Below, in pieces: positions 8,657 to 58,300 of a stretch of DNA of 64,000 nt (position 1 is the stretch's first letter; every line of letters begins with the position of its first letter). A program made the position numbers and the translations under genes. Source of the stretch: Lepidodermella squamata (lineage: Eukaryota; Animalia; Gastrotricha); assembly GCA_047495785.1 (NCBI GenBank), contig JBLDXI010000034.1, positions 434,001-498,000 on the forward strand. The letters are read 5' to 3'. The notes beneath the pieces were generated by a model, which saw nothing but the letters and a program-made list of their open reading frames with translations, was not told where the DNA came from and ran no database searches.

Positions 8657-9852
8657 ATGGCACCTGAAAAGAAAATCATTTCTGTTGTAGGAGCAACTGG
8701 ACAACAGGTAAAGCATCGAAATTCTTAGATTCTTCCTAAAGTTTGTTCAATTTCTGAAGGGCGGTTCTGTTGTTCGAGCGATTTTGGAGGATCCTGCCAC
8801 CGAATTCAAGGCTCGAGCTTTAACCCGCGATGTCAACTCGGCGAAAGCCAAGGCCCTGGCTGAGCAAGGTGTCGAAGTCGTTCAGGTCGATGCTAATGAT
8901 GAGGACGCGTTGGCCGAGGCTATCAAAGGCTCGTATGGATTGTTTTGCGTTTCGGTAATCGACTGGACCGATCCAGATAAAGAAATCGCACAGATCAAGT
9001 CGATGGCTAACGCGGCAAAGCAAGTTGAAAAATAATTTCCTACTTGTCCTAGGAATAATAATCCTCGCTCAAACGCTTTAATATTCTCATTCTAAAAAAA
9101 TCCTACAAAGAAATTAAAGATATTTTATTTGTCTGTATTTTAGGAAAGCTGGAATCAAACATGTTATTTGGTCTACCTTGGATGACCCTCGCAAATTTGG
9201 ACCGCTAAGCGACGATCATTATCCAACTTTGCACGGCAAGTACAAAGTAACGCATTGCGAGACGAAAGCTGGATCTGACAAATTCTTCGATGGCCAGCCT
9301 GTTACCTATCTGATAACCCCAGCATTTTGGGACAACTACTATACTGGCTTTTTCCCAATGCATCGCGGCCAGAATGGTAAATTGATTATCACAGTCCCAA
9401 TGGGGCATGTTAAAACGCCTGGCATGGCCGTAGACGATATTGGTCGTTGTGCTTACGGAATTTTCAAAGACCCAACTTGGATTGGCAAGCGAATTGCAAT
9501 TGCTAGTGAATCGATGACGGTCAGCGAGCAAGCGGAGAAAATTGGCAAAGTTCTAGGTGAGGAGGTTGTGTACCAGCCTGCGCCTTTCGAAGTTTTCCGG
9601 AACTTGCCGTTTCCTGGTGCTGGCGAATTGGCAAACATGTTTCAGTTTTGCCAGGATTTCTCCGAGAAATTGAATGCTAGCCGCGAAGCTACGAAGACGC
9701 TGAACCCGAAACTCATGAACTTTGATCAGTTTCTGGCGAAGTACCTACGGCAAACTTATCAAAGCTCCTTGAAGACCTTGGGAACATCGGGAAAATTGAC
9801 TCTTTCGACACTTCGGTTCGGATATAAGGGAAACTCCTTGAATAATCACTAA
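8657..9852 (+). CDS. NmrA/HSCARG-family (atypical SDR) protein, copy B, with frameshifted C-terminus
   Basis: Exons 8657-8707, 8760-9019, 9144-9852. GATGQQG Rossmann motif, ALTR, KHVIWSTL. A 4-nt insertion near 9745 replaces the GKLIKAP end with a longer tail. Confidence 0.85.
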
Positions 9853-13300: not shown

Positions 13301-13449
13301 TTCTCCTTACGAAATTCCAAGCAAACATCGACGCCGTAGATCGCCGTAATAAGACAGCCTTGCATTGGGCCACGAACTGCGATGAAAGTGTTTCTGCTGA
13401 TGACAAGCGCAAGACTATCGAAATACTCGAGCGGCCAAAATTAAACTAG
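10302..13449 (+). CDS. Pseudokinase-ankyrin repeat protein, copy 2 (about 744 aa, 11 ANK repeats + cap)
   Basis: Exons 10302-10502, 11073-11133, 11193-11475, 11528-11663, 11719-11744, 11799-11958, 12028-12069, 12124-13449. Same kinase exon sizes and motifs as copy 1. Confidence 0.88.
10535..10929. mobile_element. MITE with 30-bp perfect TIRs and 8-bp TSD (P-element-like)
   Basis: TIR CATGAGACGTACTATAGGACGCCGCGGCTT. TSD TATTTTGG at 10527-10534 and 10930-10937. Absent from intron 1 of copy 1. Confidence 0.9.
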
Positions 13450-15402: not shown

Positions 15403-16515
15403 ATGGCGCCTGTAAAGAAGATCATCTCTGTTGTAGGAGCAACTGGTCAACAAGTAAATCATCGACATTTGGTAGATTATTTTTTTAATTTGTTTAATTT
15501 ATTAAGGGTGGATCTGTTGTTCGAGCGATTTTAGAGGATCCTAATACCGAATTCAAGGCTCGAGCTTTAACCCGAGATGCCAACTCGGCGAAAGCCAAGG
15601 CCCTGGCTGAGCAAGGTGTCGAAGTCATTCAGGTTGATGCTAATGATGAGGACGCGTTGGCTGCGGCTATCAAAGGCTCGTATGGCTTGTTTTGCGTCTC
15701 GGTTGTCGATTCAATTAATCCCGATAAGGAAATTACCCAGATCAAGTCCATGGCCAACGCCGCAAGGCAATAGTCTATACTTACCGTCCCAAAAAATTAA
15801 ATATTAATTAATGAGTATTAAAATTTTTATAAATTAAAATTAAAATTAAAGAAATATTGGATAATTTACTTCCCTGTATTTTAGGAAAGCTGGAATCAAA
15901 CATGTCATCTGGTCCACCTTGGATGACCCTCGCAAATATGGACCACTCAGCGACGATCGATTTCCAACTTTGCACGGCAAGTACAAACTGCCACACAACG
16001 AGACTAAAGCTGGGTCTGACAAATTCTTCGATGGCCAGCCTGTTACGTTCATGGTAACCACAGGATTTTGGGACAATTACTACACCGGCTTGTTTGCACT
16101 GCATCGTGGCCAGGATGGAAAATTGGCGATCACAGTGCCGATGGGGCATGTCAAAACGCCCGGAATAGCTGTTGACGATATCGGCCGCTGTGCTTGTGGA
16201 ATTTTCAAAGACCCAACTTGGATTGGTAAACGCATTGCGATTGCTAGTGAAACAATGACGATTGGAGAGCAAGCTGAGAAGGTTGGAAAGGTTCTGGGCG
16301 AGGAGGTTGTGTACCAGCCTACGCCTATCGCAGTTTTCAGGAACTTTCCGTTTCCTGGCGCGGCTGAATTGGCGAACATGTTCCAGTTTTGCCAGGATTT
16401 CTCCGACCAATTGAATGCTAGCCGAGACTTCGAAGCTACGAAAAAGCTGAACCCGAAACTCATGAACTTTGATCAGTTTCTGGCGAAGTACGGCAAACTT
16501 ATCAAAGCTCCATGA
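15403..16515 (+). CDS. NmrA/HSCARG-family protein, copy C (313 aa)
   Basis: Exons 15403-15453, 15507-15766, 15885-16515. Second intron is GC-AG. Intact frame. Confidence 0.9.
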
Positions 16516-17886: not shown

Positions 17887-20555
17887 ATGCTACCTGAAAA
17901 TAAAATCATTTCCGTTGTAGGAGCAACTGGACAGCAGGTACGATATCGAAATGTTGAGATTATTCCTGAAATTCTCTCAATTTTTGAAGGGCGGTTCTGT
18001 TGTTCGAGCAATTTTGGAGGATCCTGCAACCGAATTCAAGGCTCGAGCTTTAACCCGCGATGCCAACTCGGCGAAAGCCAAGGCCTTGGCTGAGCAAGGT
18101 GTCGAAGTCGTTCAGGTCGATGCTAATGATGAAGACGCGTTGGCTGCGGCTATCAAAGGCTCGTATGGCTTGTATTGCGTCTCGGTTATCGACTGGCATG
18201 ACCCAGAAAAAGAAATTACCCAGATCAGGTCCATGGCCAACGCGGCAAGGCAAGTTATGAAAACATACTTTCCTTCTTGTCCTAAAAAATGAGAATTTAA
18301 GCTCAAACGCTTTGTCCACGTAAAATGGAAACATCTCATGACCAGAAAAATTTTAGAAAAATAAACAAAATCACGAAAGTATTTCACTTTTTAATGGGGT
18401 GAAAAAAATCCGGAGAAATTTTGTCCAACCTGGTAAAATACCGAACATTACCAAACCAGTTACCATCCGGGTTTTCCGGGATTTCACTTGTACATTTTTA
18501 TTTCTTCGGTTAAATCGCGGAGTAAAGATGGAATACGTTCTCGGTATGTTGAAGCTTTTTTATAAAATTAGCTTTTATTCCGAATTCCGGGCCTTCCGAA
18601 TTGCACAATCAAAGGGTAAAAATGGACGAAATTTTTTAAAATTTCAGGGCCGCCCGCGCTAATGTCAAAAGGGTATACAGGGTGGCCAAAAAATTCCGCA
18701 GAGCGGGAATTCGCTTCGCAACAATTTAATGAGGAGTTTTAAGAAGTTGGAGAATTTCAAGCATTTTTGCCAATGGAACTCCTCAATTTCTTGAAACTCC
18801 TCATTAAATTGATGCGAAGCGAATTCCCGCTCTGCGGAATTTTTTGGCCACCCTGTAGTTGAATTTCCTTATTCAAAAATTTAAATTTGAAAAATAAATA
18901 AAAAAAACTAAACAATTGTTGCGCAACTTCTGAGACACACTGTAACCTCCCTAAAATGAATTATCATCAAATTTTTAGAAATTAAAAACATCCCCACCTA
19001 ATTAATTTGGTAAAAAATACAGCTTTTCTCAGGAAAAAATTCAAATGATTTATTATTTTCCCTCAATTACCGTAACGTGTGGTGATTGTGGACACGGTAA
19101 CTTTGGACACTTTCGGCTTTGCAGGTGTTTAGCTTTTCAGGGTTGAACGTTTAAATCATGGGGGGTTTTGCATAAAATTCTCCGTCTCCTCAGCTTTCGT
19201 TTGAAATAAAAATCAAGACAATTGGAGCTGAAATCGGATTTCAGAAAAAGTTGCAAGCAGTTAGACTTTGGGTGCCGTTTTGGGACCCCCCTTCTATCTT
19301 TCTAAACAGTTTCAATAAAAATCGAACAGTTTTCAATAAAAATTGGCATGAGCATTCTCCTATATTTACTCTCCCTATAATCGAAGAAAAAATGACAATC
19401 CGTCGACGCGTTTTAGCAGGACATTCACCTGAAAAACAGGTGAAAATTGGGGTAATTTTGGACACTTCTGGACGGGTTAAGTATGCTGCTGCGCAGAAAC
19501 GTATTTTTATTGAACTTCCGAGAAACAGATGATGCGCCATCTGTTCATAATTTTTTTCGAAATCTGACCCAAGATTAAATGAAAAACCATGAATAACAGA
19601 TAATTCACTATGAAATTGCAATGAAATTGCATATGCAAATGAGTGTCCAAAACTACCCTCTAATTGTCCAAAGTTACCGGAACACATATTAATTAGCCAA
19701 AGGTCAGGTAAAATTCCAAAAATTTCTAGAATTTGCAATAAATTCAAGAATCACCGTCCCCACCTTTGGTAAAAATTTCAGAAATTTAGGAGCAAAGGCT
19801 GATTTTTAAGTTTCGAAAAACACGTTTTGTCCAAAGTTACCACTCGTTACGGTATAATTTAAAATTTTCGAGTACAAAAAATGATAAATTAAAAAAGAAT
19901 TCGCGATATTTCCTTGCATTTCAGGAAAGCTGGGATCAAGCATGTAATTTGGTCTACTCTGGATGACCCTCACAAATTTGGAACATTGAACGACGATCGG
20001 ATCCCAACTTTGCACGGCAAGTACAAAGTAGCCCATTGCGAGACAAAAGCTGGCTCCGACAAATTCTTCGACGGCCAGCCTGTCACCTTTATGGTAACCC
20101 CGGGATTTTGGGACAACTACTACACCGGCTTGTTTCCAATGCATCGTGGCCAGGATGGTAAACTGACGATCACCGTGCCGGTTGGGAATGTCCAAATTCC
20201 TGGCATGGCTGTCGACGATATCGGCCGCTGTGCTTACGGAATTTTCAAAGACCCAACTTGGATTGGCAAGCGAATTGCGATTGCAAGTGAGAAGAATTCT
20301 ATTAGCGAGCACGCTGAAATAATTGGCAAGGTTCTAGGTGAGGAAGTTTTATACCAGCCTTGGCCAATGGACGTGTTCCGGAACTCACCTTTCCCTGGCG
20401 CGGCTGATTTGGCGAACTTTTTCCAGTTTTGCCAGGATTTCACCGAAGAATTCAATGGTAGTCGCGACTTTGAAGCTACGAAAAAGCTGAACCCGAAACT
20501 CATGACCTTTGATCAGTTTGCGGCGAAATACGGCAAACTTATCAAAGCTCCTTGA
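17887..20555 (+). CDS. NmrA/HSCARG-family protein, copy D (313 aa)
   Basis: Exons 17887-17937, 17990-18249, 19925-20555. GC-AG intron 2 is expanded to about 1.7 kb by MITEs. Confidence 0.88.
18678..18855. mobile_element. Tc1/mariner-type foldback MITE
   Basis: TA-CAGGGTGGCCAAAAAATTCCGCAG...CTGCGGAATTTTTTGGCCACCCTG-TA. Confidence 0.9.
19070..19852. mobile_element. TA-flanked MITE with CCGTA termini (Tc1/mariner-pogo type)
   Basis: TA-CCGTAACGTGTGGT...ACCACTCGTTACGG-TA. Related to 59235-60049 and a relic near 29500-29800. Confidence 0.8.
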
Positions 20556-25585: not shown

Positions 25586-28500
25586 TCAGTGGCCATTTGC
25601 GTGGCCATTGGAGTAGCCATTCGAAGTATGGCCATTGCTGTGCCCGTTCGAATACCCATTCGACGTTTTGCCGTTAGATTGCGCTTGTTGCTGCTGGCGG
25701 TTGTAGCGTTTCCAGTACATGTCCAGCTCGAGGAAAACTAGCTTTTTAATCGGTTTAGGAAGAGCCGAATACAAGATAGGTGGTAGTGGGATTAGCGGGC
25801 TTGTCGAGGCCTTGTAACGCTTGTAGTCTGAAGAATCAGCGTAACGCTTGTCTGAACGAGCCTCAGCCAGAGGGATACCTAAAAATGAGAAAAAAATGAA
25901 TAAAAATCATAATAAAAACAATGAAATTTGAAAAAAATTTAAAATACAAATTTTCAAAAATTTCAGAAATTTCAGAAAAATATTGAAAAATTTGAAAAAA
26001 AATTCAAATTCACTTGGAATTTTTTTAAATTTTGTGTCTCAATATTTATATAATTTTATTAATGCGGAAAAAATAACTACGAGAAGACATAATTTTCCCC
26101 CGCGTCCTTAAAATTTCCAAACTCTCACTTTATCTTCATGAATCCAATTTTGTCGATTTGCGAAGCGCGTAAAAACCGCACATTTACTGTTGCGCGATGC
26201 TGAGTATCAATTGGACGAAAAACGTAAACGTAGCTACCTTGTTACTGACTGTAGAACTACCTACTCACTCTTATTCAACGACGCCGCTACCAAGCAAGCA
26301 ATCGCAGTAAATGAACAAGAACTCGTCAGAGAAAGACCGCTGAAAACCGTTCAGGCCACTTCATTGCTAGTTGACCCTGAACCTTTGATTGGTTCTTCCA
26401 ATCGCTTATTGGCTCAACAAGCTCCCAACCCAAGCCCTGTAGCTGAACCTGGCCCTTACAATCGCTCGATCGTCCCTGAACCGAGGCCTGGTCCTTCAAA
26501 TCGTTCATTGCCAATTATGACATTTTTTACTCAAAACTTCAACTTTGAACCTTCAAAATGTTGTCTCCCGACCATCCTTAAAAAACGGCTCTCAAATTTG
26601 TTTCTATTTTATAATCGATTCCAGGGGATGAAAATGAGCATAAAATCTCAAAATTATGAGATAAAAATGGGATTTCCGCTCAATTTCGCTGATAAAGCTT
26701 TCTGAATTTTTATGAATTAAAATTGGTTGAGGTGTGAAGGCCCTCTAGTCGCAGCCGACGTGCGCGTAATAATATAACCCGCGATTCGCCGCCGAAAAAG
26801 CGCGGACAGCCACCGAACCGCCTCGAAGTGCCAGTCGCCGTTAAATCACATTGTAATTTCATAGTAATTCCTTTTTTCATTTTGATGATCCACCTTAATT
26901 ACGACAGCGCCTCCGCCGCGTAAGCAGTTGCATACCGAGGAAGAGCCAGTGGCCAAACAGAAACGCGGCAGGCCTCCTAAGGTTAAAGATCTAGCATCAG
27001 CACCTAAAAAGCGCGGCCGGCTGCTGTCAGGTAAACGAACCTCGTCTCCTGTGTCAACTTCGTCATCGCCTGTTCCTGACTTGCCGATACTTGATTTCCC
27101 AGATATTGTTATTTCGCCCACATCGCCGAGAAGAAGGCGAGCAAAGAAGAGGATGATATGTTTCGATTTTTTACTTCGAAAATCAGTGAATCACAACCGT
27201 CATCTTGGAAAAATAGACAGCTTTTGGTCACGATTTTCGTACTAATAACGCCGTCGAAGGGTGGCAAAACAAAATCAATCGCCTCGTGCATAGCCTACAC
27301 CTTCTGTCTTTCTGAGTCTTCATCGAAATAATTCTGATGGACGAAGCAAGAAAGCCGATGCTCACGGTAAACTACTGTAGCGAATTTCAGGCGAAAAAGA
27401 CCTAGCCTGCCGTAAAAAGTATGAACTTCTGAGAACAACAACTTGACGAAAAATTAGCTACGAAATTGCTGGATAAGAAACTGAACGTGATCGACTACTA
27501 GCGCTGCCATTTATCTCGTATGGCGTCATTTGCGCAAACGTCAATTGCGCTAAAAACGACGCAATGAACTATAAAAATTACTTTCCCAACTAATTTTATA
27601 ATCAAAAGATTTTTTCATCTTAATCACACACCTATTTCTTTTGCTTTACCAGAAAAGCGAAGTAAATCATTTCAATATCTTTAAAAATAAATTAAATTTA
27701 AAAAATGTATGCACTATAAAAATCCGCATTTACGAAGGGAAAAGGAAAATATATGCCTTTTTTATTTTTTAGCAGTATAGCGTTATAAAAATGATTTCTA
27801 TTTTCCTCCAAATTACGAATTTTCTATCAATTTTCTCTCATTTTAGGCAATTTTTTGGCAATTTTTTTGAATAATTTCAGATTTGTTGAAAAAATGAAAA
27901 ATTTCAAAAATTTCAAAATTTTGATCTGTAATTTTGGTGTTAATTTTAAGGATTTCCAAAACTTGATCTGTAAATATGTATTAATTTCAAAAATAAATTA
28001 CAAATTTTTCAAAAATTATTTAAATTACCTGAGAGGAAGCACAGCAAAAAGAACGTGAGACCAGGTGAGGCGGCGCTGATTAAATAGCCCAGCGAAAATC
28101 TGTTCGCCGCATAAATCGAACACGAGCTCAGGTACAGGCCCAGCCACATGATAATCTCGCCGAAATAATTCGGATGCCGCGAGTAGTACCACAGGCCGGT
28201 ATCGGCGTCGAAATCGCTCGACTGTTTCGACGGGCTCGTCGCAATAGGCGTCCGAGCGTAACGCTGATGGTCGGAAACGGCCTCGAAAAAGAACCCAACG
28301 GCCCAAATCGCGAGACCGGCATAATCGAGGCGATTCAGTGGCACGTCGACTGAGGCTGAATTTGTGAGGGTGACAGGTAGCGACACGGTCCATACCCACA
28401 CCATTTGGATGACCCAAAAGCCGAGGAAACGCAGGAAATTTTCGCGAATTCCGTCGAATCGCGCGTCTTTATCGCGGCGTAGGACGCGATTGAGGAGGAA

Positions 28501-29060
28501 AAAACCGAGGCGAACCGCCCAGATTGTGACGCATAGGGTGTGGAGAGCTTGCCGGGTTGTATGAGTGCCTTTTAGCAGGAAAACCAGCCATGCGAGAAGG
28601 GCAAAATTCATCGACCCAGCAAAGTCGGTTACCTGAAAGAGAAATTTCAATAAATTTAAATTAAATTTAAAAATTAAAATAGATTTAAAATTTTGTAAAT
28701 TAAAAAAAAATGTTTGAAAAATTAAAAAATTCAGAAAAATTACTTAATTATTTCATTTAATTTTTCTCTCTTTTTTACTAACGATCATGAGTCCCACTTG
28801 ATGAATTGACCCGCAATTGTTGAAAGGTCATTGCGAGAATATCAGCCGGCGGAAAAAATCTATACAAGAATTTTCTGAAATTTTGGCTCAGGTCCAATAA
28901 TGTTTTTTTTAATTAACGAAAAATCAATTTTTGAGCTCACCTTATCGAATTTGAAGGTATTAGCAACGGCGAAGAATGACAGTTGGATGCAGACCGTAGC
29001 CAGGCCGGACAAGCCAAGGTAGTACGGCATGTCGTTGCTTATCACGGCGGTTGAAGCCAT
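25586..29060 (-). CDS. DUF1295 / steroid 5-alpha-reductase-like membrane protein
   Basis: Exons 29060-28941, 28632-28029, 25878-25586. Motifs DKVTDFAG, WAVRLG, DARFD, GLWYYSRHPNYFGE, SGIPLAE; SNGH-repeat tail. Confidence 0.9.
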
Positions 29061-31865: not shown

Positions 31866-31947
31866 CGACGCAGAAGGGATTCGAACCCTCGCGGGCAGAG
31901 CCCAATGGATTAGCAGTCCATCGCCTTAACCACTCGGCCACCGCGTC
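31866..31947 (-). tRNA. tRNA-Ser (anticodon GCT)
   Basis: GACGCGGTGGCCGAGTGGTTAAGGCGATGGACTGCTAATCCATTGGGCTCTGCCCGCGAGGGTTCGAATCCCTTCTGCGTCG: 82 nt, long variable arm, no encoded CCA, followed by a T-run terminator. Confidence 0.97.
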
Positions 31948-32317: not shown

Positions 32318-35300
32318 ATGCCAGAATTTAAACGCGAAAAATCGAGAATTTTCGCGACTCAACTTGGCGCTCAAAGAAATGACGCTACTACCGAGCTTCT
32401 CGATTACCTAACCAGCAATAGCGACGGCTCTTTTCATCTAATTCTGGACAATCCTGAGAACAACGAGCCTATCGAGATTAATACGGTTCGCTATTCAAAG
32501 ATGAATCAATTTATTTGATTTTTTCCAATTTTTAAGGTGGACCTTTTCTTACTATTTATTGCGAAAGATTATAATGCGGCTGGAGATGTTAGAAAAGCCG
32601 ATCAAGCCGATAGAGGTCAAGTACCGCTGATGACCATTTACCTGAACGAGCTCAGACCAAACCCATCCGGACTTCTCGGCACCATAATTTCAAACTGTAT
32701 CGACTGTCTAAATTACTTCGAAAATGCTAATGTCGAACATTTGGGCAAGGAATTTCTCGCGAAAATTCAGCAAATTTTATCCGCGACAAAGTTGCGAACT
32801 TTCAGTTTCCCGGCTAATTTAGCTGGCAAATTTTTCCCACGGTCGAATGAGGTCACGAAATCATTGCGCAGCGCATTTCGTGACGCGTTGCAGGGTGACC
32901 GCAATAAGCTGCTGGTAATTGCGGGTCCGGAGGGTGTCGGCAAAACCACCTTAATCGCTAATTTCCTACGCAACCCTGCTAATCACGGCGATATGAAGCG
33001 CGCTGTTTGGATTAGCGGCTATAAGTGGCACGCAAATGCCGTGTTTACGAGTGACGCAATCAGTGAGGCGCGACGGATTATTAAGGCGGATGTTACGCGA
33101 GATTTGCGCCACCTGCCCGCTGATACGCGACCGGATGTGATGATTTTCGACGATATCAGCCACTTTTCTATCGTTGATAGCCTTCACGCAATCTACTCGG
33201 GCGATAACACGCTGGTTGTAGTACTGACTAATGACCGGCATCTGACTTCAATGAAGTTAGACACCAGATGGCACGCGATCACGCAAAATGTTGTAGAACT
33301 ACCGCCGTTTACTGACCACGAAATTATTTCATTCGCGAAAATCTACTCGCCAGGGCTGGAGAAGAAACTAAGCCAGGCTCAACTGAGAGAATTAGCCCAG
33401 AGAAGTTACGGAATCGCGAGAAATGTCGTCCAATTCTGCGAAAGTTTCCGCTGCATTGCGAAAACCGGAAGTCACAGCGACTTCGAAAAGCTGGTAGGCA
33501 ATGCGTTGCGGAGCCTTGCCCCACCTGTTAACTACCATGGCCTGGACAAAAAGGGGCCTTTCACGAGCCCGAGGGTTGAAACAAGTCGAGGTAGGTCTCA
33601 AACAATGCTTCAGATCTCAGAATCCGGGCAAAATCTCTACCCGCCACCAGCGTAAGTCGAAACCGCTCTCCCTAGCAACGGTTGCCAAGGACTTTGTTTT
33701 TACCTAGATATTACGATGTTCCACGTTTTCAGCCCTATCTCAACCGGAAGGAGGAAGAAATGCGGGTTTTATCTGGAATTAAAGCCCTGGCAACATCTGA
33801 CGACCCATCAATCGGCTTCTTCCTGATTTTAGGCAGACCCGGTATCGGGAAAACAACCCTGGTATCAGCTGCTCTTCACGAACCGGCTTATCACGACTTT
33901 GTGTCTAACATTTGCAATATTCAAATCGTGTTCTATCTAAGCAATCCTTGCCGTTTCAAGTCTGAGAAGCAATTTGTCGATGTTTTGTTGGAACTGGGTG
34001 CCAAAGAGGCGCCTGATTACGCCAATGAAGCCACACCTTGGTTGAATCTATCTGAAATGGTCACATACTTCGAACGGGTCAGGAAACAGCGAATTCTCTT
34101 CGTGTTCGACGATGTTTTTGATCAGTTATTGCTGATTGATTTCCGGAAAAATTGCCCAACTGGACTCTGCGTTGTCATAACGAATCAAGAATTTGAAATT
34201 TTCGATCAAATCACGAAATCTGGCACTTATACTGTTCCACCTCTAACCGACTCTCAAACCCTCGAATTATTTCAAAATCAGCTGAATTTGCGGAATCGGC
34301 TTGGAATGCATCATATGACCTTGTTATCGCAGCGATTTTGCAATGGCTCGTCGTTGATCGCCGCTCAAATAGCCGGTCAGTTCGCCCGATCTCGTCGAAT
34401 TGTGAAAAAATTCGAAGAAATCACATCTAAATTCGCTCCATGTCGTTTTGAGATCGATTTATCCCACGAAATGGCGAAAACAGCTTTCCAGTATCTCGAT
34501 GAAGATTCAAAGCTATGTTTCCTCACTTTCCTAATCTTCGACCCTGATGAGCCGATTTGTCTACATGATCTAGCCGTTATGCTGGCGAGAGAGGAGAAGG
34601 ACGCGAGTCAAATTTTGGAGACACTTCAAGATTTCTCGTTAATTCGACGATCTGAGCTGAAAACGGCGACCAATTACCACATGCATCGCCTGTGCCATGA
34701 AACCGGTCTATTGATCGCGACTGAAATGTTTCGAGTTTCAAATCTGCCGAGCCTAAGATTGAAAATTGTGAGAAAATTGGAGGCGAGCCAAAATTTGATT
34801 GATTTCGCACATCGTTTGATCGAAGGCGATTGTTACGTAAGACTTTGCGATATTTTCTCGAAAATTCTTAAGGCGGATTATGGAAGTTACTCAAAAGATT
34901 GCAAGACCCCAACGAAGTTGCAGGATTCCCTGGGCCGAACTGCTTTAATGGCAGCTGCTCGATGCGAAAATCTCCCGATGCTCCGACAACTCTACAAATC
35001 ATGTAAAGACGCCGTCTCACTTCAGGACAATCAAGGCCGGACTGCTTTTATTTGGTCGTTTTTGAAGGCGAATAACCTGGAGGTCACGAAGTTTTTGTAC
35101 GAAGCTTGGCCTATGGCGATCGATAAGAAGGACGCGAGTGGGAAGTCAGTCTTCACTTTGGCTGTCGAGGCTTGTCACGATGTTGCGATTCTAGAGTTCC
35201 TATTAGATAACGATCCTCGATTTCTGAAGGACCAAAACGAAACAACTGGAGGCACGACCCTCATGCATGCGGCTCGTTGCGGGAATTTGACAGCGGTTGA

Positions 35301-35700
35301 GTTGGTTTTCAGAAAATGGCCAGATTCAGTCGCAATCTTAGACAAACGCGGCCGATCAGCGTTGATGTGGGCGTGCGAACGCGGCCATTTCGCCGTAGCA
35401 CGTTTCCTCTTTGAATCTTGGCCTGAAGCTGTTCAGTTGAAGGAAGTAGACACAGGCGAGACTTGCCTCATGCTGGCATTGCAATCTGGGAGTTTAGAAC
35501 TGGTTAAATTCATCTATGAAGCTTGGACTGACGGCCTGGAGGTTGAGTCTATGACTAAGAAAACTGCTATGTCGCTGGCGATCGAATTGGGCCAGATGGA
35601 GCTCCTTAGATATCTTCATGACGTGTGGGCTGCTCGAATGACTTTCGTCGCTGCGATCAAAGCTGATCCTGCTGAAGATGCGGATGATGAAAAAGAATGA
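32318..35700 (+). CDS. NLR-like protein (about 1091 aa): TIR-like domain + two tandem STAND (NB-ARC-like) NTPases + ankyrin repeats
   Basis: Exons 32318-32485, 32537-33651, 33708-35700 join in frame. Walker A GPEGVGKT and GRPGIGKT; Walker B VMIFDD and ILFVFDD; winged-helix MHRL; about 7 ANK repeats. Confidence 0.85.
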
Positions 35701-36101
35701 AACGATTTTTCCAAAGACTTTTATTTCTCTTAGCTCATATAACTCTCATTTCTTTGTCTGAATTCAGGTCATTTTTTTATAAGAACCCCTCTTCGTTACC
35801 TTTTATTCCTACAACCCGGTGTTTCGCGTTTCAGGAGTCGCTTCACAGGATTTGTCGCAAATCAGTCCTAACATCCTTCTATTACAACATTGATCCCCGC
35901 TGTGAAAAAATAAACTTGATAATTAAGCTGGATTTTTAAATTTCGTCGCGCAATTTGAGAATCCGGAAAAAATTGTTTAGCATGCACGCTAGTTTCCTGT
36001 CACGGAGACTGACCAAAATCAACAACGCACCGGCTCATCGGTCGACATTTAGTCAGTCATTCAGTGAAAAATCCAGTTGTAAACTTGTATTTAACCAGTT
36101 C

Positions 36102-37954: not shown

Positions 37955-39180
37955 ATGATCGCAAGGATCTACGTTATTTTTGCGATTGTCAAAGCCTGCT
38001 TTGCTTCGAATGAGTTGGCAATCGCAGCGTTGAAGCAAAAGGTGATGACAAGCTGTCCATTTCTAACTTCGGCTGATCTGCTATTCGAGAATAAGCTAGC
38101 AACTGGCAGTCCGATTACAGTTTTCACTTGGGTTAATATGACTCGTTTCATTGAAATCAACGATTTAGACCAAAGGTAAAGAAACCCTATCTAAACGCAA
38201 TGTCAATCCTTGAATCTATCAACAGGCTCTCAATTTACGCGACAATGATGCTGTATTGGAAACTCCCTTGCAATGTCTCCTACTCAGAATTGAACTCTAC
38301 AAAGAGTAAGATGGACAAGCTACTTCAACACGGAGCTCTCGAATTCGGAATGGCTGGTCAGTCCAACTGGGAGCCTAATGTTATCCATTACAACTCAGTC
38401 GGCAAATCAAACGTGAAAGACAGGTATATTTTCCATAGACCTCACCTAACCCTTGAAAATGTGGGTTTAAGCTGGTCTGGCTCAACGAAGGTCGAGGTTA
38501 ATCCTCAATCTGGATCGGTTATCGGAAGTTGGGAAGGTTTGGGCCGCTTCGACTCAGCATGCGGTGGTTTCTCATTCGAAAAATTCCCATTTGACAAGCT
38601 ATCTTGCGCCATTGTACTACGAGCTGAATCCTCGAGAAAATACCTCACCTACAACATATCATATTTCGGCATAGATGCTAGCAAAATGGACGATTTTATT
38701 GACGATAGCGATTTGTGGACGTACGAAGGAAGTGGGGCTGAAAAACTTGTCGATCAAAGCTGCGATCTTCTCATGCTAACCACGCGTTTCCAGCGCCGCC
38801 ATTTGTATTATATCTGCAATCTATTCGTGCCTATTATCGGCCTTTTCCTGCTGCAAATGGGTAGCTTGATGATGCCGCCGAGTGTCCCTGATCGGCCAAC
38901 ATTCAGCATGACTGTTGTACTGGCTTACGTTTTCCTCTTAACATCGATCTTCGAAAGCATCCCTCGAACTTCAGATGCAGTCTATCTCGTCCTTCTTGTG
39001 GCGTTCAAATTTTTCTGTGGAATATTTCTGACAATGTACAACCTAGCTGCATGCGCTTTTGCTGGGAAAAGGTTCAAGGACCCTCATACCTTGAGATACT
39101 TTGATTTAGCTGTGTTTTTATTGCTGACTCTAATTACGTTTGCTGTCGATTTTGCTTTCATGGTTCTAATGTTAACATGA
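37955..39180 (+). CDS. Divergent Cys-loop ligand-gated ion channel subunit
   Basis: Exons 37955-38175 and 38226-39180. Signal peptide, WEPNV, C..FPFD..C loop, pre-M1 R, four TM helices. Confidence 0.9.
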
Positions 39181-39372
39181 TGAGCTTTGAAATATGAGCA
39201 AATGCGAGGAATCCTTTATAGGTTAAGCCAGGAATAGCTTGCAATCGCACGGGAAATTCTAAAAGCGGACGCTTTTATCACTCCCCACCCACTGGTGATT
39301 TCCCTAATGGGTCTAGAACCCGAGCCAAAAGATGCAGTACATGGCAAAATTAAACCTTCAAAATCACGAATA

Positions 39373-41556
39373 ATGCTGTTTGTTTTAGCAATCTTCCTCA
39401 GGTTTGAAACAGCCGTAATCGCGGCTAAAAATGCTGGAATTCAAATATTAGCCCTTCTCCCCATGGGTAGCAATGACCCACTAAGCGGTCAGGCTTGTGC
39501 AGCAGCAACGCAAGTCGCGATTGATGGCTTCAATCAAAGATCAGACCTGCTTCCTGGCATCACAGTTCAGGCTGTTTTCAAAGACGAAGGCACAGCTGCT
39601 TCGAAAGCTCCTGTTCAATTCATGGATTTTGTTAACAAAGCTACGACAAGTATAGCCCCGGTTGTAGTCGGAACTTACGGAGTGTGTGAGAACATTTCCC
39701 CACTAGCTCGACAATTCAATATGATCCATGTTTCTTCGAATTGCGGCGGAATCGCTTATACGAACAACCGGAAAAATTTCCCTAATTTATACAGAATTCG
39801 AGTACCAAACGTTTTCGGCCTCTCCGCCGCAATTTTCGCGTTGAAGGCAGGAAAATGGCGTGAAGTCGGCATCATTTTCTCTGGTGATTTCGCTACGTCC
39901 CAATCCTTGTATCAGGCCGCAATTTCGGCTGGTCTCAAGGTTCCACTGTACTCTGGAAGTCCGGATTATGATGAAGGAATTTTCCAAAGTATTCTCGATA
40001 GTAAAGTCCGAGTTCTTATTTCGACCTATGCCGAACCTAGGGCTGTTCAGTTTCTATGTGGGGCTTACAGTATCGGAATACGAGCCCCTCAATTCACCTT
40101 CATCTTCAATGCGAATTCTTATTTCAACCCGTTTTTGAAGGGCTATAAACTCCCTGGGGGTTGCCATATCACTGCAATCGAACAGCAAATCAAGGGCACG
40201 TTTTGGGGTGGATCTTTCGGTTACGCAGTCCTAAACTACGGGAATACATCTCTTGGTTACGATTTGCCTGAATTTGAGGAGAGAGTTGATCGAATTTTGG
40301 CTAGATTCGGCTTAAGTAGACCTCCCGATGACCAAAAACGGCACCAATGCCACGATGCTATGCTTCATGCCCTGATGACAATGGACAAAGCCCAGAAGAC
40401 ACTTACAGCTCAAAACCTATCAATTCTCGATTTCAGTCTTAATCCTTCGAAAATCATGGCTGTTGTTAACGAAAGTGCGAGAAAGATCGATTTCGTAGGG
40501 GTGAGAATAGGGCGGATAACGTATTCTAGCAGGGTTGAATTGGACTCAGAATCTCAACTTGTCGGCCAAATTGTGGATAGACAGCTTCGAATCGTCTACA
40601 GAATTTCGATGTCTGGAAATGCGACTGATCCTAGTGATTACAGGTCCTATAGGGTGGCACAGTCACAAGACCTAGTCTGGGCGACGAAATCTGGAAATCC
40701 GCCGAAAGATTTGAGCGATGTAACTCATCTTGAAGTGAGTATCCCCGAAAGCTACATGATTGCCTCAGCGATCATCGCAACCTTGTCTGTTAGCTTTCTC
40801 GGTATTTTGCTAGCATTGATCCTTAAGAAAAGCTCGGGAGGACTATCGACCAATAAATTCACATACATATTCACAGTTTTAACTGTAATAGCTTCCTTCC
40901 TATTCAGTTTCGAAGGAAATGTCGAGATATTTATGGCTAGAATCGTTCTGGCAGCAATTGGTGTTACCGGAACGAACGCCATGGTTTTGTCTAGCTTAAC
41001 CTTGATCTTCCGAAGCCACAGAAAATACCTTCGAGAAACAGAAAAGAAATCTCAGGTGATCGATTTCATGCTAGAAATCTATAATAATCTGCTGCCTATG
41101 AGATTTACGGCTCTCGCAGCTGTAACTTCAGTTGCTATTGTTGGACTCATCCTCATTTTATGGCTGATAGTTTTGGACACGCCGTTTCTCCTAATCGAGA
41201 CAACCCCAATAGAGTTCAACGAAGTTATGGATTTTTACTTCGATACGTCTTCAACGAAATTCTCATGCAACTATCAGACAGTATGGGTCATCGCAATTAG
41301 CGGCGTGAATGGCTTGATCCTAATAACGGCATTATTACTGGCCTACGAATTGCGACACGCCAAACTTCACCCGATTTTAGCAGTAGAGAATCAAGCCCTC
41401 AAATACGCGACCATAAATTCTATAGGATGTATGATCGTGATATTGCTGAATGTGCTGGTCTTGGATAACTACGTCACGCAACTCGGTGTTTGGACATTCG
41501 GACTGAATCTGTACAGCGTGATGACTTGTCTCATTTTGTTTGTGCCGGGTATTTAG
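39373..41556 (+). CDS. Intronless class C GPCR (GABA-B-like architecture: Venus flytrap + 7TM)
   Basis: Likely start MLFVLAIF (signal peptide). ANF-receptor-type motifs (N.RSDLLPG, FPNLYR), no Cys-rich domain, seven hydrophobic segments ending LFVP. Confidence 0.85.
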   Translation: MLFVLAIFLRFETAVIAAKNAGIQILALLPMGSNDPLSGQACAAATQVAIDGFNQRSDLLPGITVQAVFKDEGTAASKAPVQFMDFVNKATTSIAPVVVGTYGVCENISPLARQFNMIHVSSNCGGIAYTNNRKNFPNLYRIRVPNVFGLSAAIFALKAGKWREVGIIFSGDFATSQSLYQAAISAGLKVPLYSGSPDYDEGIFQSILDSKVRVLISTYAEPRAVQFLCGAYSIGIRAPQFTFIFNANSYFNPFLKGYKLPGGCHITAIEQQIKGTFWGGSFGYAVLNYGNTSLGYDLPEFEERVDRILARFGLSRPPDDQKRHQCHDAMLHALMTMDKAQKTLTAQNLSILDFSLNPSKIMAVVNESARKIDFVGVRIGRITYSSRVELDSESQLVGQIVDRQLRIVYRISMSGNATDPSDYRSYRVAQSQDLVWATKSGNPPKDLSDVTHLEVSIPESYMIASAIIATLSVSFLGILLALILKKSSGGLSTNKFTYIFTVLTVIASFLFSFEGNVEIFMARIVLAAIGVTGTNAMVLSSLTLIFRSHRKYLRETEKKSQVIDFMLEIYNNLLPMRFTALAAVTSVAIVGLILILWLIVLDTPFLLIETTPIEFNEVMDFYFDTSSTKFSCNYQTVWVIAISGVNGLILITALLLAYELRHAKLHPILAVENQALKYATINSIGCMIVILLNVLVLDNYVTQLGVWTFGLNLYSVMTCLILFVPGI

Positions 41557-54610: not shown

Positions 54611-55341
54611 TTTCATTTGGCGGATAGGGCGTTAGGTGGCATAAAAAAGTGGTCGCATGCCGCAGCATTTGCAAATTCGGCTCAAATATGTAAATTCACA
54701 ACGGGGAGATTGTTAGTTTCCTATCTGTTACAGTGTTGTCTATATGTATCCAACCCCACAAAGGAATTCAAAGGTAACTGACTCAGGGTATTCCGGACAT
54801 AACAGCTCAGTGTGAATATTCTCATGCGAATTGAGGTCAAAGTTCACATTGAAGCGAGATGATGATTTAAAGAAAAAGAAAAAGAAAATAAATGAAATTT
54901 TACAATAAATAGTTTGTTAAATTCCCAGTGGTAGAGTTTGATAAATTAGAATTTTTTTCTGTAATTACCGATTACTGAATTTGCTCATCCGGATACGATT
55001 AGACAAGAGCTGATATCTTTATCCTTCGAAGAATTATTTATCTTCCATTTTCCATTCAGCACTGAAAAGCAAAATGTAGCAAATGTTTCGCTTTTTCTCA
55101 GGAATTGCAAAATAGATAGACTACAACCAAAGATAAAACCTGAGCAAAACGGTTCTACCGGCACACGGCACACTTTAGAAATATACAAGCACGGCATACT
55201 GGCTGGTATGTTATATGATAAGACGAGCTCCTAATCGCCGCAAAACGACAGAAATTGCACTTATGTCAAGCTTTCATCATGTTCTCTATTTCTTAAGGCC
55301 TATTTTTTGTCTCAGCCATCAAATTCAACCAAGAATTGAAT

Positions 55342-58300
55342 ATGGATCCAAGGAGGCATCCATCTATGTCGGGGTTCACCTTTGTTAAAAACTTGGGTGA
55401 TGGCCGCCTACGAAAATCTGTGTTGTACAAACATAGCGGGCGTAAACAAGAGCGAGTGGTTTTCAAAGAAACCAACTTGACTATCCTTCGAAACGAATTT
55501 CGAAACGACTTCGATAGAATTGCTGAACTTCTGAACGAAAGAGTGAGTTTTAAGTTCTACGAATTGTAGATTTTCGATTCAAAATCATCATGAGGGTAGT
55601 GAGAGGTTACTTCAATGAGGGATTAACCTGGTGAAACGGCCGGCTAACTCCTATAATTTATGTAGTAACAAGTATGTTTCAAAATCGCAGGATTCGTTAA
55701 TGGCCAGTATCAGCCATGCAAACATAGCCAAGATTTACAACGCTTTCGAAGGTTTGCAATCCAGTTTTTCGAATTATCCTAAAAATTTTGACATAGAGGA
55801 ACTCCAAGGTTCTCGCATGAGATACTTGGTGATGGAGTTTTGCGATGGTGGAAGCTTCGAACGCCTGATCTTGACTGAGACTGCACCCATCCCTGAAATC
55901 ATGCTTCAAATATGGTCGCGTCAACTCGTATCAGCTTTGGTTTATCTTCACGGCCGAAGAATCGTTCATCGCAACATAACGACAAGCAATGTACTTCTAA
56001 CAAAAGACCGCGGCACAGCGAAACTAGCTGATTTAGGAATCATTGAGAAATTAGACATGTAAGATTGCAAAGTAGCGTTCACTCGGTGTCAAGCTTGATT
56101 GTCTAATCAGTTGTTCGAAAATGACTGCTCTAGCGAAGTGGAGGACTTCCCCTCCGGAGGTATGGAACGGTCAACCGAAATCATCTGCAAGTGATGTCTG
56201 GTCGCTGGGATTTGCGCTCTTCAAATTAGCCAACTTCAAAGAACCAGTATGAGAAATAACCTAAGTGATTAGTTTTTTTTTGAAACTCAAATAATTTCCC
56301 AGATCGACTCGACAGGTGATATCATGAGGTAAAGCTGGGGAGTTGAATTCAGTGTTCAGTGGTCGCAAGCTACATTTTTTTATATTTATTTTGATATAGT
56401 AAAAACCCTTTGAAACCATTTGAGTCCTCTCCTGGCTATTCCTATGAATTCCGCGGTTTTGTTATGATAATGCTCGCTAGGAATCCAGGTGATCGGCCGA
56501 ACTCAAGTCAGCTTCAAGCCAGTATATTTCTGCGGAAATCAGCGCCCATGCAGTATACAAAGGTTTCATTACTTTCTAAATAATCTGAATTCTCGCTTGA
56601 ACCCTAATGCATCGTTGCTTTTATTCTCCAGTCAGTCGGTCAACCCAGCCTAGGGGATGTTGAGGTAGCTACAGATTTGTCCACTGTTGATTCAGGCTTT
56701 TGAGCTTTGCCAGGAGCTGTTTAAATGTGTACGGCAGAAAGACGTGTTGAAATTGGTGCAACTGCTGTTGAACAGGGACCTAGGTCTTAGCCCTGATTGC
56801 AAAGACACCATGGGGCGTCCTCTGTTGTATCTTGCTGCTGAGACAGGCTACAGCGACATTGTGGAAACTCTGGTCAGGCAATTCAAGGCAGATGTTGAAG
56901 TTAGAAACAAAAATGGCGCGACTCCACTGTGGGCCGCCGCCAAGAATGGCCACGTCGAGGTGGTGAAGATGTTGGCTGGCGAGTTCAAGGCCGAAGTTAA
57001 TTATGCCAACAGTGCCCTTGAGACGCCACTGTATGTCGCAGCCAAGAATAACAAACTCGAGGTGGTGACGATGTTGGTTGGCACGTTCAAGGCCGTCGTG
57101 AATAAGGCCGCAAATGATGGTCGTACGCCACTTTTTATAGCCGCCCAGGAGGGCCACGTCAAGGTGGTAGAAGCACTTGCTGGCCACATAGCCGCCCAGC
57201 AGGGCCACGTCAAGGTGGAAGAGGCACTTGCCTCGGTTAATGATGCAAAGAAAGCATTGACTGAGGCCGCTGATAAGAAACATTTCGATGTTGTCGATAT
57301 CTTGTTCACGAAATTCGGAGACAAAATCGACGCCGCTGTCAGACACGATGCAATCGAAAAATCTATGCTCGCAGAGCATCCTGGGATTCGACCGACGTCT
57401 AGTCAGCTTCGATTCAGTTATTTTTTTCTGAATTCGGCACCTATGCGGTATACAAAGGTATGATCAATTTCCCCCACCTGAAATCTGTTGCAATCATGCA
57501 TTGTTCCTTTCCTTCTTCAGCCGGACCATTCATCCGCCGAACCCAAGCAAGAGATTGTTAAGGTAGCTCCGAATTATTTTACACTTGATTCAGTTGTTAG
57601 TAATTGAAATTTCCAGGAGTTATTTGACTGTGTACGGGGGAAGAAAGATGTTTTAAAATTGGTGCAGCTACTGTCGAACACAAACCTCGGTCTTACCCCT
57701 GATTGCAAAGACGAAAAGGGCTTCCCGCTTTTATACCAGGCTGCTCGAAACGGCTACAGCGACGTTGTGGAAACTCTTGTCAGGCGATTCAAGGCAGACG
57801 TTGAAGTTCGTACTGCATATGGCGCGACACCACTGTTTGCAGCCGCCTTCAATGGCTACGTCGAGGTGGTCCGGATGTTTGCTGGCGAGTTCAATGCCGA
57901 CGTGAATTCTACCACTACTGATGGTCGTACGCCACTGTACATCGCCGCCCAGAATGGCCACACCGAGGTGGTCCGGATGATGGCGAACGAGTTCAAGGTC
58001 GATGTTAATTTTGCCACCAATGATGGCCGTACGCCACTGTTCACCGCTGCCTTCAATGGCCACATCGAGGTGGTGAGGCTGTTGGCTGGCGAGTTCAATG
58101 CTGATGTTAATTCGGCCGATAAGGGTGGCTATACGCCAGTGTACGTCGCCGCCTTCAATGGCCACGCTGACATTGTGAGGCTTTTGGCTGGCGAGTTCAA
58201 GGCCGACGTGAATAGGGCCGAAAAAGATGGACTTACACCACTGTACGCCGCCGCCTTCAATGGCCATACCGACATTGTGCGGATTTTAGCTGGCGAGTTC

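Follow-up and report, generated by a model that had tools for sequence, protein, structure and literature searches.

A predicted NLR-like receptor gene with an additional NTPase module before its NB-ARC and ankyrin domains in the gastrotrich Lepidodermella squamata

NLRs normally carry one NTPase, as the initial annotation of the locus described here had stated, although plant NLRs with NB-ARC domains in tandem have been described. Among animal proteins, ANKRD50, TANC1 and TANC2 combine a P-loop STAND module with ankyrin repeats that follow it; these proteins, conserved throughout the animals, have a single NTPase, which belongs to the NPHP3_N/NACHT type and carries a winged helix of the TANC type. 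The plant tandem NB-ARC NLRs include WTN1 and Sr62-NLR of wheat, which serve as helpers and are activated by kinase-pseudokinase proteins whose genes lie 114 kb and 20 kb from them (bioRxiv 10.1101/2024.08.30.610185, 10.1101/2024.08.30.610287), and rice Pib, which has two NB-ARC domains (PMC4917536). The plant proteins have a coiled-coil N-domain and LRRs.

We analysed a window of 64,000 nucleotides (contig JBLDXI010000034.1, positions 434,001 to 498,000), in which three ORF pieces are present on the forward strand at 32318-32485, 32537-33651 and 33708-35700. Joined, they form a CDS of 3276 nt that encodes 1091 aa with no internal stops, which agrees, at the sequence level, with the earlier claim that three pieces splice into a protein of about 1091 aa; both introns are bounded by GT..AG and preserve the frame. 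If the splice model is right, the domain order is an N-terminal domain, an AAA+/STAND-like NTPase, a disordered linker of about 70 aa, an NB-ARC module and seven ankyrin repeats. The domains, their intact motifs and splice sites compatible with the frame were all observed. The gene is real and intact, and its product is a switch protein resembling immune receptors; the TIR domain is putative, and the splicing into a single protein is predicted. We favour, with a probability of roughly 0.55, one compact three-exon gene whose product, composed of these five parts over 1091 aa, would be a cytosolic NLR-like (STAND) switch.

Like WTN1, Sr62-NLR and Pib, such a chain would place two nucleotide-binding modules before a repeat sensor, and dead-kinase-ankyrin genes lie about 19 kb off on both sides, a likeness to WTN1 and Sr62-NLR in position only. 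However, a possibly TIR-like N-domain and ankyrin repeats are found here instead of the coiled coil and LRRs, the first module is far more divergent (Orc1/Cdc6-like and devoid of a winged helix), and the sequence relationship with these plant proteins is limited to the NB-ARC class. With plant TNLs and NRC1, the locus shares, in its predicted single chain, the succession of effector domain, NB-ARC and repeats, and also an NB-ARC module that aligns with that of NRC1, and the histidine of the MHD motif; it differs by its ankyrin repeats in place of LRRs, its extra NTPase, the apparent lack of the catalytic Glu in the putative TIR, if present, and the sequences ITNQ, NGSS and MHR where plant proteins have TTR, GLPL and MHD. 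The NTPase that precedes the ankyrin repeats is of the NB-ARC type, unlike that of ANKRD50 and TANC1/2. Finally, the front half resembles bacterial proteins of about 384-690 aa, in which a TIR_2 or SEFIR domain is followed by an AAA module (AAA_22/AAA_35, nSTAND), that is, a TIR followed by a P-loop NTPase with a lid, of the same size; this resemblance is at the level of features, with no demonstrable homology (HMMER E ≤ 1e-3, PADLOC).

Exon 1 (32318-32485, + strand; aa 1-56) contains the start codon and the first third of an N-terminal domain of alternating strands and helices, with the motifs RIFATQ, ELLDYL and HLILD. The only GT of the exon 1 ORF, at 32486, is the donor of intron 1 (32486-32536, +; 51 nt, GTTCGC...TTTTTAAG), which is AT-rich and in frame but contains a TGA. 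A tRNA gene is located 370 nt upstream of exon 1, and a further upstream exon is therefore unlikely. Intron 2 (33652-33707, +; 56 nt, GTAAGT...TTTGTTTTTACCTAG) has a perfect GTAAGT donor, which overlaps the stop codon of the second ORF (TAA at 33653-33655), and a T-rich acceptor ending in CCTAG; this pair was the top-scoring one among in-frame combinations in donor/acceptor scoring. Unlike intron 1 and the intron of the DUF1295 gene, intron 2 is not AT-rich. After its last domain, the second ORF continues for about 80 codons up to the donor, and no canonical poly(A) hexamer was found in the 105-nt gap between its stop and the ATG at 33760. The third exon ends with an acidic C-terminal tail and a TGA stop (35650-35700, +, stop at 35698-35700), as translated from the joined CDS, and the sole canonical poly(A) hexamer 3' of the gene, AATAAA (35909-35914, +), lies 209 nt past this stop.

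Read evidence came from one possibly-RNA run, assembled as short contigs that covered 33400-35750 only. These contigs flanked junction 2 on both sides, from about 33400 to the 3' end of the gene, and the bin holding intron 2 was among the three with the lowest depth from 33420 on. No joint skipping the intron was present among the joints listed for 33400-35750, where joints between opposite strands were seen. A scan of the whole window for 35-120-nt GT..AG introns that bridge open frames was uninformative, as these were no commoner than the TG..GA control. The intron proposed at 33652-33707 was thus upheld in the quality of its sites and in its frame, but not by an RNA joint among those listed. 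Splicing into one 1091-aa chain is favoured by the good splice sites, by the preserved frame and by a gap devoid of poly(A) signals.

The remainder of the N-terminal domain (aa 57-154; 32537-32830, +) contains DLFLLFIAKDY, GDVRKAD and VPLMTIYL, followed by two helices. The initial annotation had described this N-terminus as being of the TIR_2 type. Neither exon 1 nor the initial 103 aa of exon 2 matched the TIR, TIR_2 or SEFIR profiles of Pfam at E ≤ 10, in searches run on separate exon pieces, which lowers sensitivity; likewise, no TIR was returned by PADLOC, NCBIfam, PDB sequences (phmmer) or tblastn against plasmids when the gene pieces were used as queries. Conversely, the language-model neighbours of aa 57-154 alone all belonged to TIR_2, TIR or SEFIR clusters (best score 0.85), and those of the front half were bacterial proteins of the TIR_2/SEFIR+AAA_22 type, about 384 aa long, which scored 0.93-0.94 and had 176-187 features in common with it. 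When exon 2 was folded without exon 1, aa 1-99 of this piece had an AlphaFold pLDDT below 50. The claim of a TIR_2-type domain was therefore not substantiated by any TIR-clan profile match in Pfam, PADLOC or PDB, and it is the language-model neighbours and the pattern seen by eye that make the domain probably TIR- or flavodoxin-like. By eye, in a register set without a TIR-profile alignment, AGDVRKAD occupies the position of the S-x-W-x-x-x-E motif, with Ala or Asp at the Glu site; if the domain is a TIR, it would thus seem to lack the catalytic glutamate.

Two complete P-loops had been claimed, and both were confirmed by the presence of Walker A and Walker B motifs in each module. In the first NTPase module (aa ~155-384; 32831-33520, +), Walker A reads GPEGVGKT (aa 186; 32924-32947) and Walker B VMIFDD (aa 257; 33137-33154), accompanied by R-x-x-E, the sensor-1 LTND, PPFTD and a helical lid with YGIAR; its ORF is uninterrupted over 372 codons. 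The GxP position is occupied by YGIA(R), next to which a P/S-rich linker stands in place of a winged helix. All Pfam matches were sub-threshold: AAA_16 (2e-6, 28.7 bits versus a cut-off of 32.6), nSTAND3 (3e-4, 21.1 versus 27.2) and NB-ARC (2e-3, 17.8 versus 23.5). The nearest relatives were archaeal Orc1/Cdc6 AAA+ proteins, with marginal E-values of 3e-6 to 7e-4 (HMMER, tblastn). Module 1 shares with them R-x-x-E, Walker A, Walker B, the sensor-1 Asn and the lid G-x-A-R, the sensor-1 Asn and the lid Arg being aligned; however, the position of the SR arginine finger reads AI, and the C-terminal DNA-binding winged helix is missing. AlphaFold, given a shallow Cdc6-type alignment, modelled exon 2 with an overall pLDDT of 48, the usable part being the P-loop core of module 1 only, where a five-strand core and a lid were obtained (pLDDT 55-78). 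Foldseek matched this model to AAA+ proteins with ORC/Cdc6 at the top, in a ranking biased by the Cdc6-rich alignment.

The two modules aligned with each other in hhalign over 160 columns, from R-x-x-E to PPxTD (probability 88%, E 2.9e-6, 21% identity); with the P-loop masked, the z-score was 2.9, and the score was reached in 6 of 300 shuffles. Residue spacings in modules 1 and 2 were 29 and 27 between Walker B and sensor-1, 26 and 20 between sensor-1 and PPxTD, and 35 in both between PPxTD and the G-motif. By these alignments, module 1 is only distantly related to module 2, and the shared family-specific motifs and collinear spacing suggest that an ancient duplication or fusion inside one family gave rise to it. 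Module 1 can be described from its sequence as an AAA+/STAND-like core with a lid and no winged helix, the resemblance to Orc1/Cdc6 being at least as strong as that to STAND proteins and STAND identity not being demonstrable. Of the two STAND NTPases that had been claimed, two P-loop modules before the ankyrin array were thus retrieved, but the first, closest to the Orc1/Cdc6 type, is not demonstrably STAND.

The linker between the modules is P/S/R/G-rich and probably disordered in its first part (aa ~385-427; 33521-33651, +), which had a pLDDT of 26-39 and no family match; in its second part (aa 428-444; 33708-33756, +), a PPAY (PPxY) motif is created across the splice junction at aa 426-429. 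The second NTPase module (aa ~445-775; 33757-34749, +) contains R-x-x-E (NRKEEE), Walker A GRPGIGKT (aa 470; 33832-33855), Walker B LFVFDD (aa 558; 34096-34113) and PPLTD. It matched Pfam NB-ARC (PF00931) over model positions 10-233 of 248, with an E-value of 2.1e-11 and 44 bits versus a cut-off of 23.5; NB-ARC was preferred over NACHT (5e-4) and NPHP3_N (0.075). Moreover, it aligned with the NB-ARC of tomato NRC1 over 240 residues, from the P-loop to RNBS-D (E 2e-3), the RNBS-D-like CFLTFLIFDPDE facing the CFLYF motif of NRC1. RNBS-B TTR and GLPL are absent, ITNQ (aa 585) and CNGSSLIA (aa 640) being found there in the NRC1 alignment, and MHR (aa 753; 34681-34689) retains the His of MHD, with Asp replaced by Arg. 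The earlier observations that both modules lack the GxP proline (YGIA and NGSS) and that only the second has a winged helix were corroborated, the latter at the motif level by the NRC1 alignment through the RNBS-D-like motif and by MHR. On its motifs and alignments, module 2 is a genuine NB-ARC, for which a winged-helix fold is predicted from motifs; the AlphaFold model of this piece, from a single sequence, had a pLDDT of 36. The seven ankyrin repeats (aa ~826-1075; 34900-35649, +; Ank_2, 6.7e-29) form an unusual variant, in which W-P follows the second helix, and the array matched PDB ankyrin sequences with E-values down to 4e-23.

We infer an immune role, with a TIR fold at the N-terminus, in which the ankyrin array would bind a ligand or partner and thereby keep the NB-ARC module ADP-bound and off. 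Release would lead to nucleotide exchange and oligomerisation, which would cluster the N-terminal domain together with the first NTPase as the output or as an adaptor platform. Because it has no winged-helix clamp, the first NTPase would be unable to auto-inhibit alone, and it would most likely provide a second oligomerisation or nucleotide-sensing interface. The NLR-like double-NTPase sensor initially put forward is upheld in part, by the two P-loop NTPase modules that precede an ankyrin array in the predicted chain.

The locus could instead hold two adjacent genes, one for a 428-aa protein with the N-domain and the AAA+ module, ending at TAA 33653-33655, and one for a 646-aa NB-ARC-ankyrin protein starting at ATG 33760; they might be co-transcribed, with spliced-leader trans-splicing at the TTTTCAG acceptor ending at 33732. 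The second ORF indeed closes at a real stop, and the third has an in-frame ATG 20 codons before the P-loop, with this good acceptor-like sequence 27 nt 5' of it; in addition, the front half is self-contained and of a bacterial type in architecture and size (TIR-AAA proteins of about 384 aa), and the possibly-RNA run gave no splice joint among those listed. We nevertheless regard two genes as unlikely, given a perfect GTAAGT donor exactly at the stop and, 56 nt further, an acceptor that keeps the frame, a gap of just 105 nt that is devoid of a poly(A) hexamer and spanned by contig coverage in that run, and some 80 stop-free codons past the last domain of the second ORF. Similarly, we doubt that, within one protein, module 1 is a decaying remnant left after two paralogous receptor genes fused, with the winged helix and repeats lost from the upstream copy and the N-domain from the downstream one; module 1 would then lack a nucleotide-dependent function and act as a spacer or docking surface only. 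Such an origin would fit a module that lacks a winged helix, falls below every family threshold and is just 21% identical to module 2, as well as the intron and disordered linker lying exactly between the two halves and the putative TIR without its catalytic Glu (by eye); yet Walker A, Walker B, the sensor-1 Asn, the R-x-x-E before the P-loop and the lid Arg are all intact, which is unexpected in a decaying domain, and the ORF is open over 372 codons.

A function outside immunity, as a STAND scaffold of the ANKRD50/TANC/NPHP3 type (P-loop and ankyrin) in trafficking or signalling assemblies, appears quite improbable. The language-model neighbours of the NB-ARC-ankyrin piece were ANKRD50, TANC2 and NPHP3_N-ankyrin clusters (0.90-0.93), but Pfam favours NB-ARC (2e-11) over NACHT (5e-4) and NPHP3_N (0.075), the RNBS-D and MHD-like motifs are those of an NB-ARC, and no orthologues were found in word-index and HMMER searches, which fits a fast-evolving, lineage-specific family and not a conserved scaffold. 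Least credible, and in our view highly improbable, is that the front 428 aa are a TIR-AAA defence cassette of bacterial type that was fused to an NB-ARC-ankyrin receptor, which might then be a helper of the neighbouring dead-kinase-ankyrin family. Were the cassette fusion true, the protein would be a "two-engine" NLR of an animal, with sensing by the NB-ARC and execution by the first NTPase/TIR-like unit; with the helper role, it would independently parallel, in an animal, the plant WTK3-WTN1 and Sr62TK-Sr62NLR sensor-helper pairs. No bacterial TIR-AAA protein was found at E ≤ 1e-3 in an exhaustive HMMER search of exon 2, nor in PADLOC.

Under the favoured reading of a single three-exon gene, the locus would be a divergent member of a known receptor class and not a new kind of system, the extra ATPase module before NB-ARC and ankyrin being unusual. 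The architecture did not turn out to be that of a known conserved orthogroup: at E ≤ 1e-3, HMMER retrieved only 7 weak matches to the front half (exon 2) among 1.84 billion representative proteins. The top match, an Antedon NACHT-LRR protein, was rejected as a repeat-driven chance similarity, as it was the sum of 14 weak matches between LRR units and one stretch of 42 aa. Word-index protein searches with the NB-ARC part and exon 2 gave no matches, self included, and the 646-aa ORF was not on record by exact look-up. With the neighbouring DUF1295 gene as query, the best matches had no more than 56% identity and came from scattered taxa (Rozella, a mite, fungi and plants), and were therefore not taxonomically diagnostic. 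In a full-text literature search, we found no description of NB-ARC receptors with TIR-like heads and non-LRR sensors in rotifers; such receptors are scarcely studied in animals. The gene raises the question of whether a second intact P-loop without an auto-inhibitory winged helix alters STAND oligomerisation or signalling, and the plant tandem NB-ARC NLRs that are helpers of kinase-pseudokinase sensors make this question of a second nucleotide engine timely. If this genome holds several double-module genes, they would form a family in which NLR modularity could be studied as a tractable natural experiment.

Within the 64-kb window, no paralogue of the NTPase modules was detected, the matches being to ankyrin only; the ORFs at 38200-41556, considered as a candidate paralogue, were rejected as a channel and a receptor gene. 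Loose co-location is all that speaks for the partnership with nearby pseudokinase-ankyrin proteins that had been proposed. Of the kinase-ankyrin genes, the nearest end at 13449 on one side and start near 55336 on the other, at least 19 kb from the gene, and the unrelated genes in between comprise NmrA-like, tRNA, DUF1295, ion-channel, receptor and transporter genes.

The three open pieces of the receptor gene (32318-32518, 32537-33655 and 33682-35700, + strand; ORF scan) can be joined without breaking the reading frame. Conceptual splicing of 32318-32485, 32537-33651 and 33708-35700 gave a 3276-nt frame encoding 1091 amino acids, with no internal stops. Intron 1 (32486-32536, + strand; 51 nt), which is AT-rich and has the 3' end TTTTTAAG, uses the sole GT of the exon-1 ORF as its donor. 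Intron 2 (33652-33707, + strand; 56 nt, 3' end TTTGTTTTTACCTAG) starts with a perfect GTAAGT donor, which shares bases with the second piece's stop codon. When every GT..AG pair preserving the open frame was enumerated, only this pair gave a short intron with both a consensus donor and a pyrimidine-rich acceptor. A tRNA gene (31866-31947, - strand; 82 nt, Rfam 63 bits) lies 370 nt upstream of the receptor ATG and a potassium-channel gene begins about 250 nt downstream of its stop; the receptor gene is therefore compact, with no room for further exons. A PPAY motif (PPxY, WW-domain-binding type; residues 426-429, window positions 33642-33714) was present only in the spliced product, its prolines being encoded by exon 2, its alanine by a codon split by intron 2, and its tyrosine by exon 3; this motif could have arisen by chance.

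The NTPase module of the third piece (module 2) is, judging from its sequence, a genuine NB-ARC: its Pfam score of 44 bits (E = 2e-11) exceeds the cut-off of 23.5, the match covers positions 10-233 of the 248-position model, and its best solved relative was the NB-ARC of tomato NRC1, with 240 residues aligned from the P-loop to the RNBS-D-like CFLTFLIFDPDE. Both of its Walker motifs are intact (A, GRPGIGKT; B, LFVFDD), with deviations elsewhere: ITNQ for TTR, NGSS for GLPL, and MHR for MHD, where the histidine is kept. The NB-ARC is followed by seven ankyrin repeats (34900-35649; Ank_2, 7e-29, with matches to PDB ankyrins) of an atypical variant, in which the second helix is followed by a conserved W-P (EAWPMAI, RKWPDSV, ESWPEAV, EAWTDGL). 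The NB-ARC-ankyrin half had been described correctly in the initial annotation.

The P-loop module of the second piece (module 1) also has both Walker motifs intact (A, GPEGVGKT; B, VMIFDD), together with a helical lid and an LTND resembling sensor 1, so that the proposal of two P-loop engines is borne out; alignments and motifs likewise agree with a winged helix in module 2 only. The label "STAND NTPase" goes beyond the evidence for module 1, which fell below every curated Pfam threshold (AAA_16, 2e-6; nSTAND3, 3e-4; NB-ARC, 2e-3). When 1.84 billion representative proteins were searched exhaustively by HMMER with the second piece, only seven matches reached E ≤ 1e-3 (best, 5e-7), five of them Orc1/Cdc6-type AAA+ proteins of 320-360 aa, a family also recovered by tblastn of plasmids. 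The sixth match, P0003 (889 aa), contains repeated novel-STAND-type P-loop modules. The top match, a crinoid NACHT-LRR protein, was rejected as a relative, its score being a summed repeat artefact. In alignment, module 1 shares with the Orc1/Cdc6 proteins an R-x-x-E, both Walker motifs, the sensor-1 asparagine and the lid G-x-A-R, but lacks their arginine finger and winged helix. A profile of the module 1 alignment matched module 2 collinearly (hhalign probability 88%, E = 3e-6, 160 columns), and the unusual motifs hhhTN(D/Q) and PP(F/L)TD are common to both modules at nearly equal spacing; with the P-loop masked, modest similarity was observed (z = 2.9). The AlphaFold model of the second piece (pLDDT 48 overall, 55-78 in the core) has a P-loop core of five strands and a lid; a P/S-rich stretch of low confidence comes next. 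In Foldseek the model retrieved AAA+ proteins, ORC/Cdc6 first, a ranking biased by the input alignment. Module 1 is an AAA+/STAND-like module, anciently related to module 2.

The N-terminal domain, formed by exon 1 and the start of exon 2, had been read as a TIR. Profile searches did not bear this out: with exon 1 or the first 103 residues of exon 2 as query, Pfam gave no TIR-clan match at E ≤ 10, and no TIR match came from PADLOC (despite its many TIR models), NCBIfam, PDB sequences or plasmid tblastn; the domain was searched as two separate pieces, which lowers sensitivity. Among the searches, only language-model neighbours spoke for the earlier reading. Those of the second piece were bacterial TIR_2/SEFIR+AAA_22 proteins of about 384 aa (score 0.93-0.94; 176-187 shared features), and its first 98 residues alone retrieved ten TIR-clan clusters (score ≤ 0.85). 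Together with the alternating strand/helix pattern seen by eye, these neighbours lean somewhat towards a TIR-like fold, from which the catalytic glutamate is missing if the by-eye register holds.

We consider that the receptor is encoded as a single chain, with a probability of about 0.7. A single transcript is favoured on indirect grounds: the frame is open up to the donor, the gap contains no poly(A) hexamer and contig coverage continues over the junction. The second piece remains open for about 80 codons past its last recognisable domain and ends exactly at the intron 2 donor; no poly(A) hexamer occurs in the 105 nt from its stop to the next in-frame ATG (33760), and an AATAAA was found 209 nt downstream of the final receptor stop. 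Contig coverage of X1, the only one of two sequencing runs that may be RNA (the other is the probable source assembly), continues over the intron 2 junction, and the intron 2 bin ranked among the three shallowest X1 bins from 33420 on. That the second and third pieces are separate genes is unlikely, even though intron 2 is not AT-rich, in contrast to intron 1 and the intron of the DUF1295 gene, and a TTTTCAG located 27 nt before ATG 33760 is a possible trans-splice acceptor; read by eye, the same TTTTCAG would be out of frame as a cis acceptor for the GTAAGT donor. As to the claim that the pieces splice into a protein of about 1091 aa, the frame-compatible join holds, whereas none of the listed joints of the short X1 contigs covering about 33400-35750 skipped an intron. 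These contigs were 60-180 nt long at the receptor, with many folding back on the opposite strand at a distance of about 75-115 nt, a pattern that points to an artefact of assembly or library and not to a biological feature. X1 covered only the 3'-most 2.3 kb of the gene, a profile like that of a 3'-biased RNA library.

Overall, the single chain reads as an NB-ARC-ankyrin receptor of NLR-like type that carries an additional NTPase devoid of a winged helix and, probably, a degenerate TIR. Protein word searches found no close relatives of either half, and with the exhaustive HMMER search nearly blank as well, the receptor does not correspond to a known conserved orthogroup; correspondence to one would have refuted the original proposal. 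Full-text literature searches found no description of a TIR-NB-ARC-ankyrin or tandem NB-ARC plus ankyrin family in rotifers. In such a receptor, the ankyrin array would bind a ligand or partner and hold the NB-ARC closed and ADP-bound, and release would permit nucleotide exchange and oligomerisation. The clustered N-terminal domain and module 1 would then form the output platform, as a flexible 70-aa linker would permit. Module 1, with intact catalytic motifs and no auto-inhibitory clamp, would most plausibly provide a second nucleotide-dependent assembly interface.

The partnership suggested with the kinase-ankyrin genes (about 2-5.3, 10-13.4 and 55.3-58.8 kb) amounts to loose co-location: these genes lie at least 19 kb away on both sides, separated from the receptor gene by NmrA-like, tRNA, DUF1295, ion-channel, receptor and transporter genes. 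Their ankyrin arrays are only about 23% identical to that of the receptor. The kinase domain at 55631-56062 (+ strand) has HRN for HRD and DLG for DFG; this copy is therefore predicted to lack catalytic activity, and the label "pseudokinase" is fair for it. Wheat has NLR helpers with tandem NB-ARC domains that are activated by kinase-pseudokinase sensors, the helper and sensor genes lying 114 kb and 20 kb apart in the two cases (bioRxiv 10.1101/2024.08.30.610185; 10.1101/2024.08.30.610287). The double-NTPase layout thus has a parallel, and these pairs are a real precedent, not cited in the initial annotation, for a kinase/receptor partnership.

Among the other genes, the DUF1295 (steroid-reductase-like) gene (27900-29060, - strand) may have been horizontally acquired; its closest relatives were no more than 56% identical and belonged to Rozella, zygomycete fungi, a mite record and plants, and no close animal orthologue was found. 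The gene has an intron of about 300 nt with a very high AT content and the ends GTGAGC...TTTCAG. Three NmrA-like paralogues (9178-9852, 15919-16515 and 19914-20555, + strand) were observed in a row within 11 kb.
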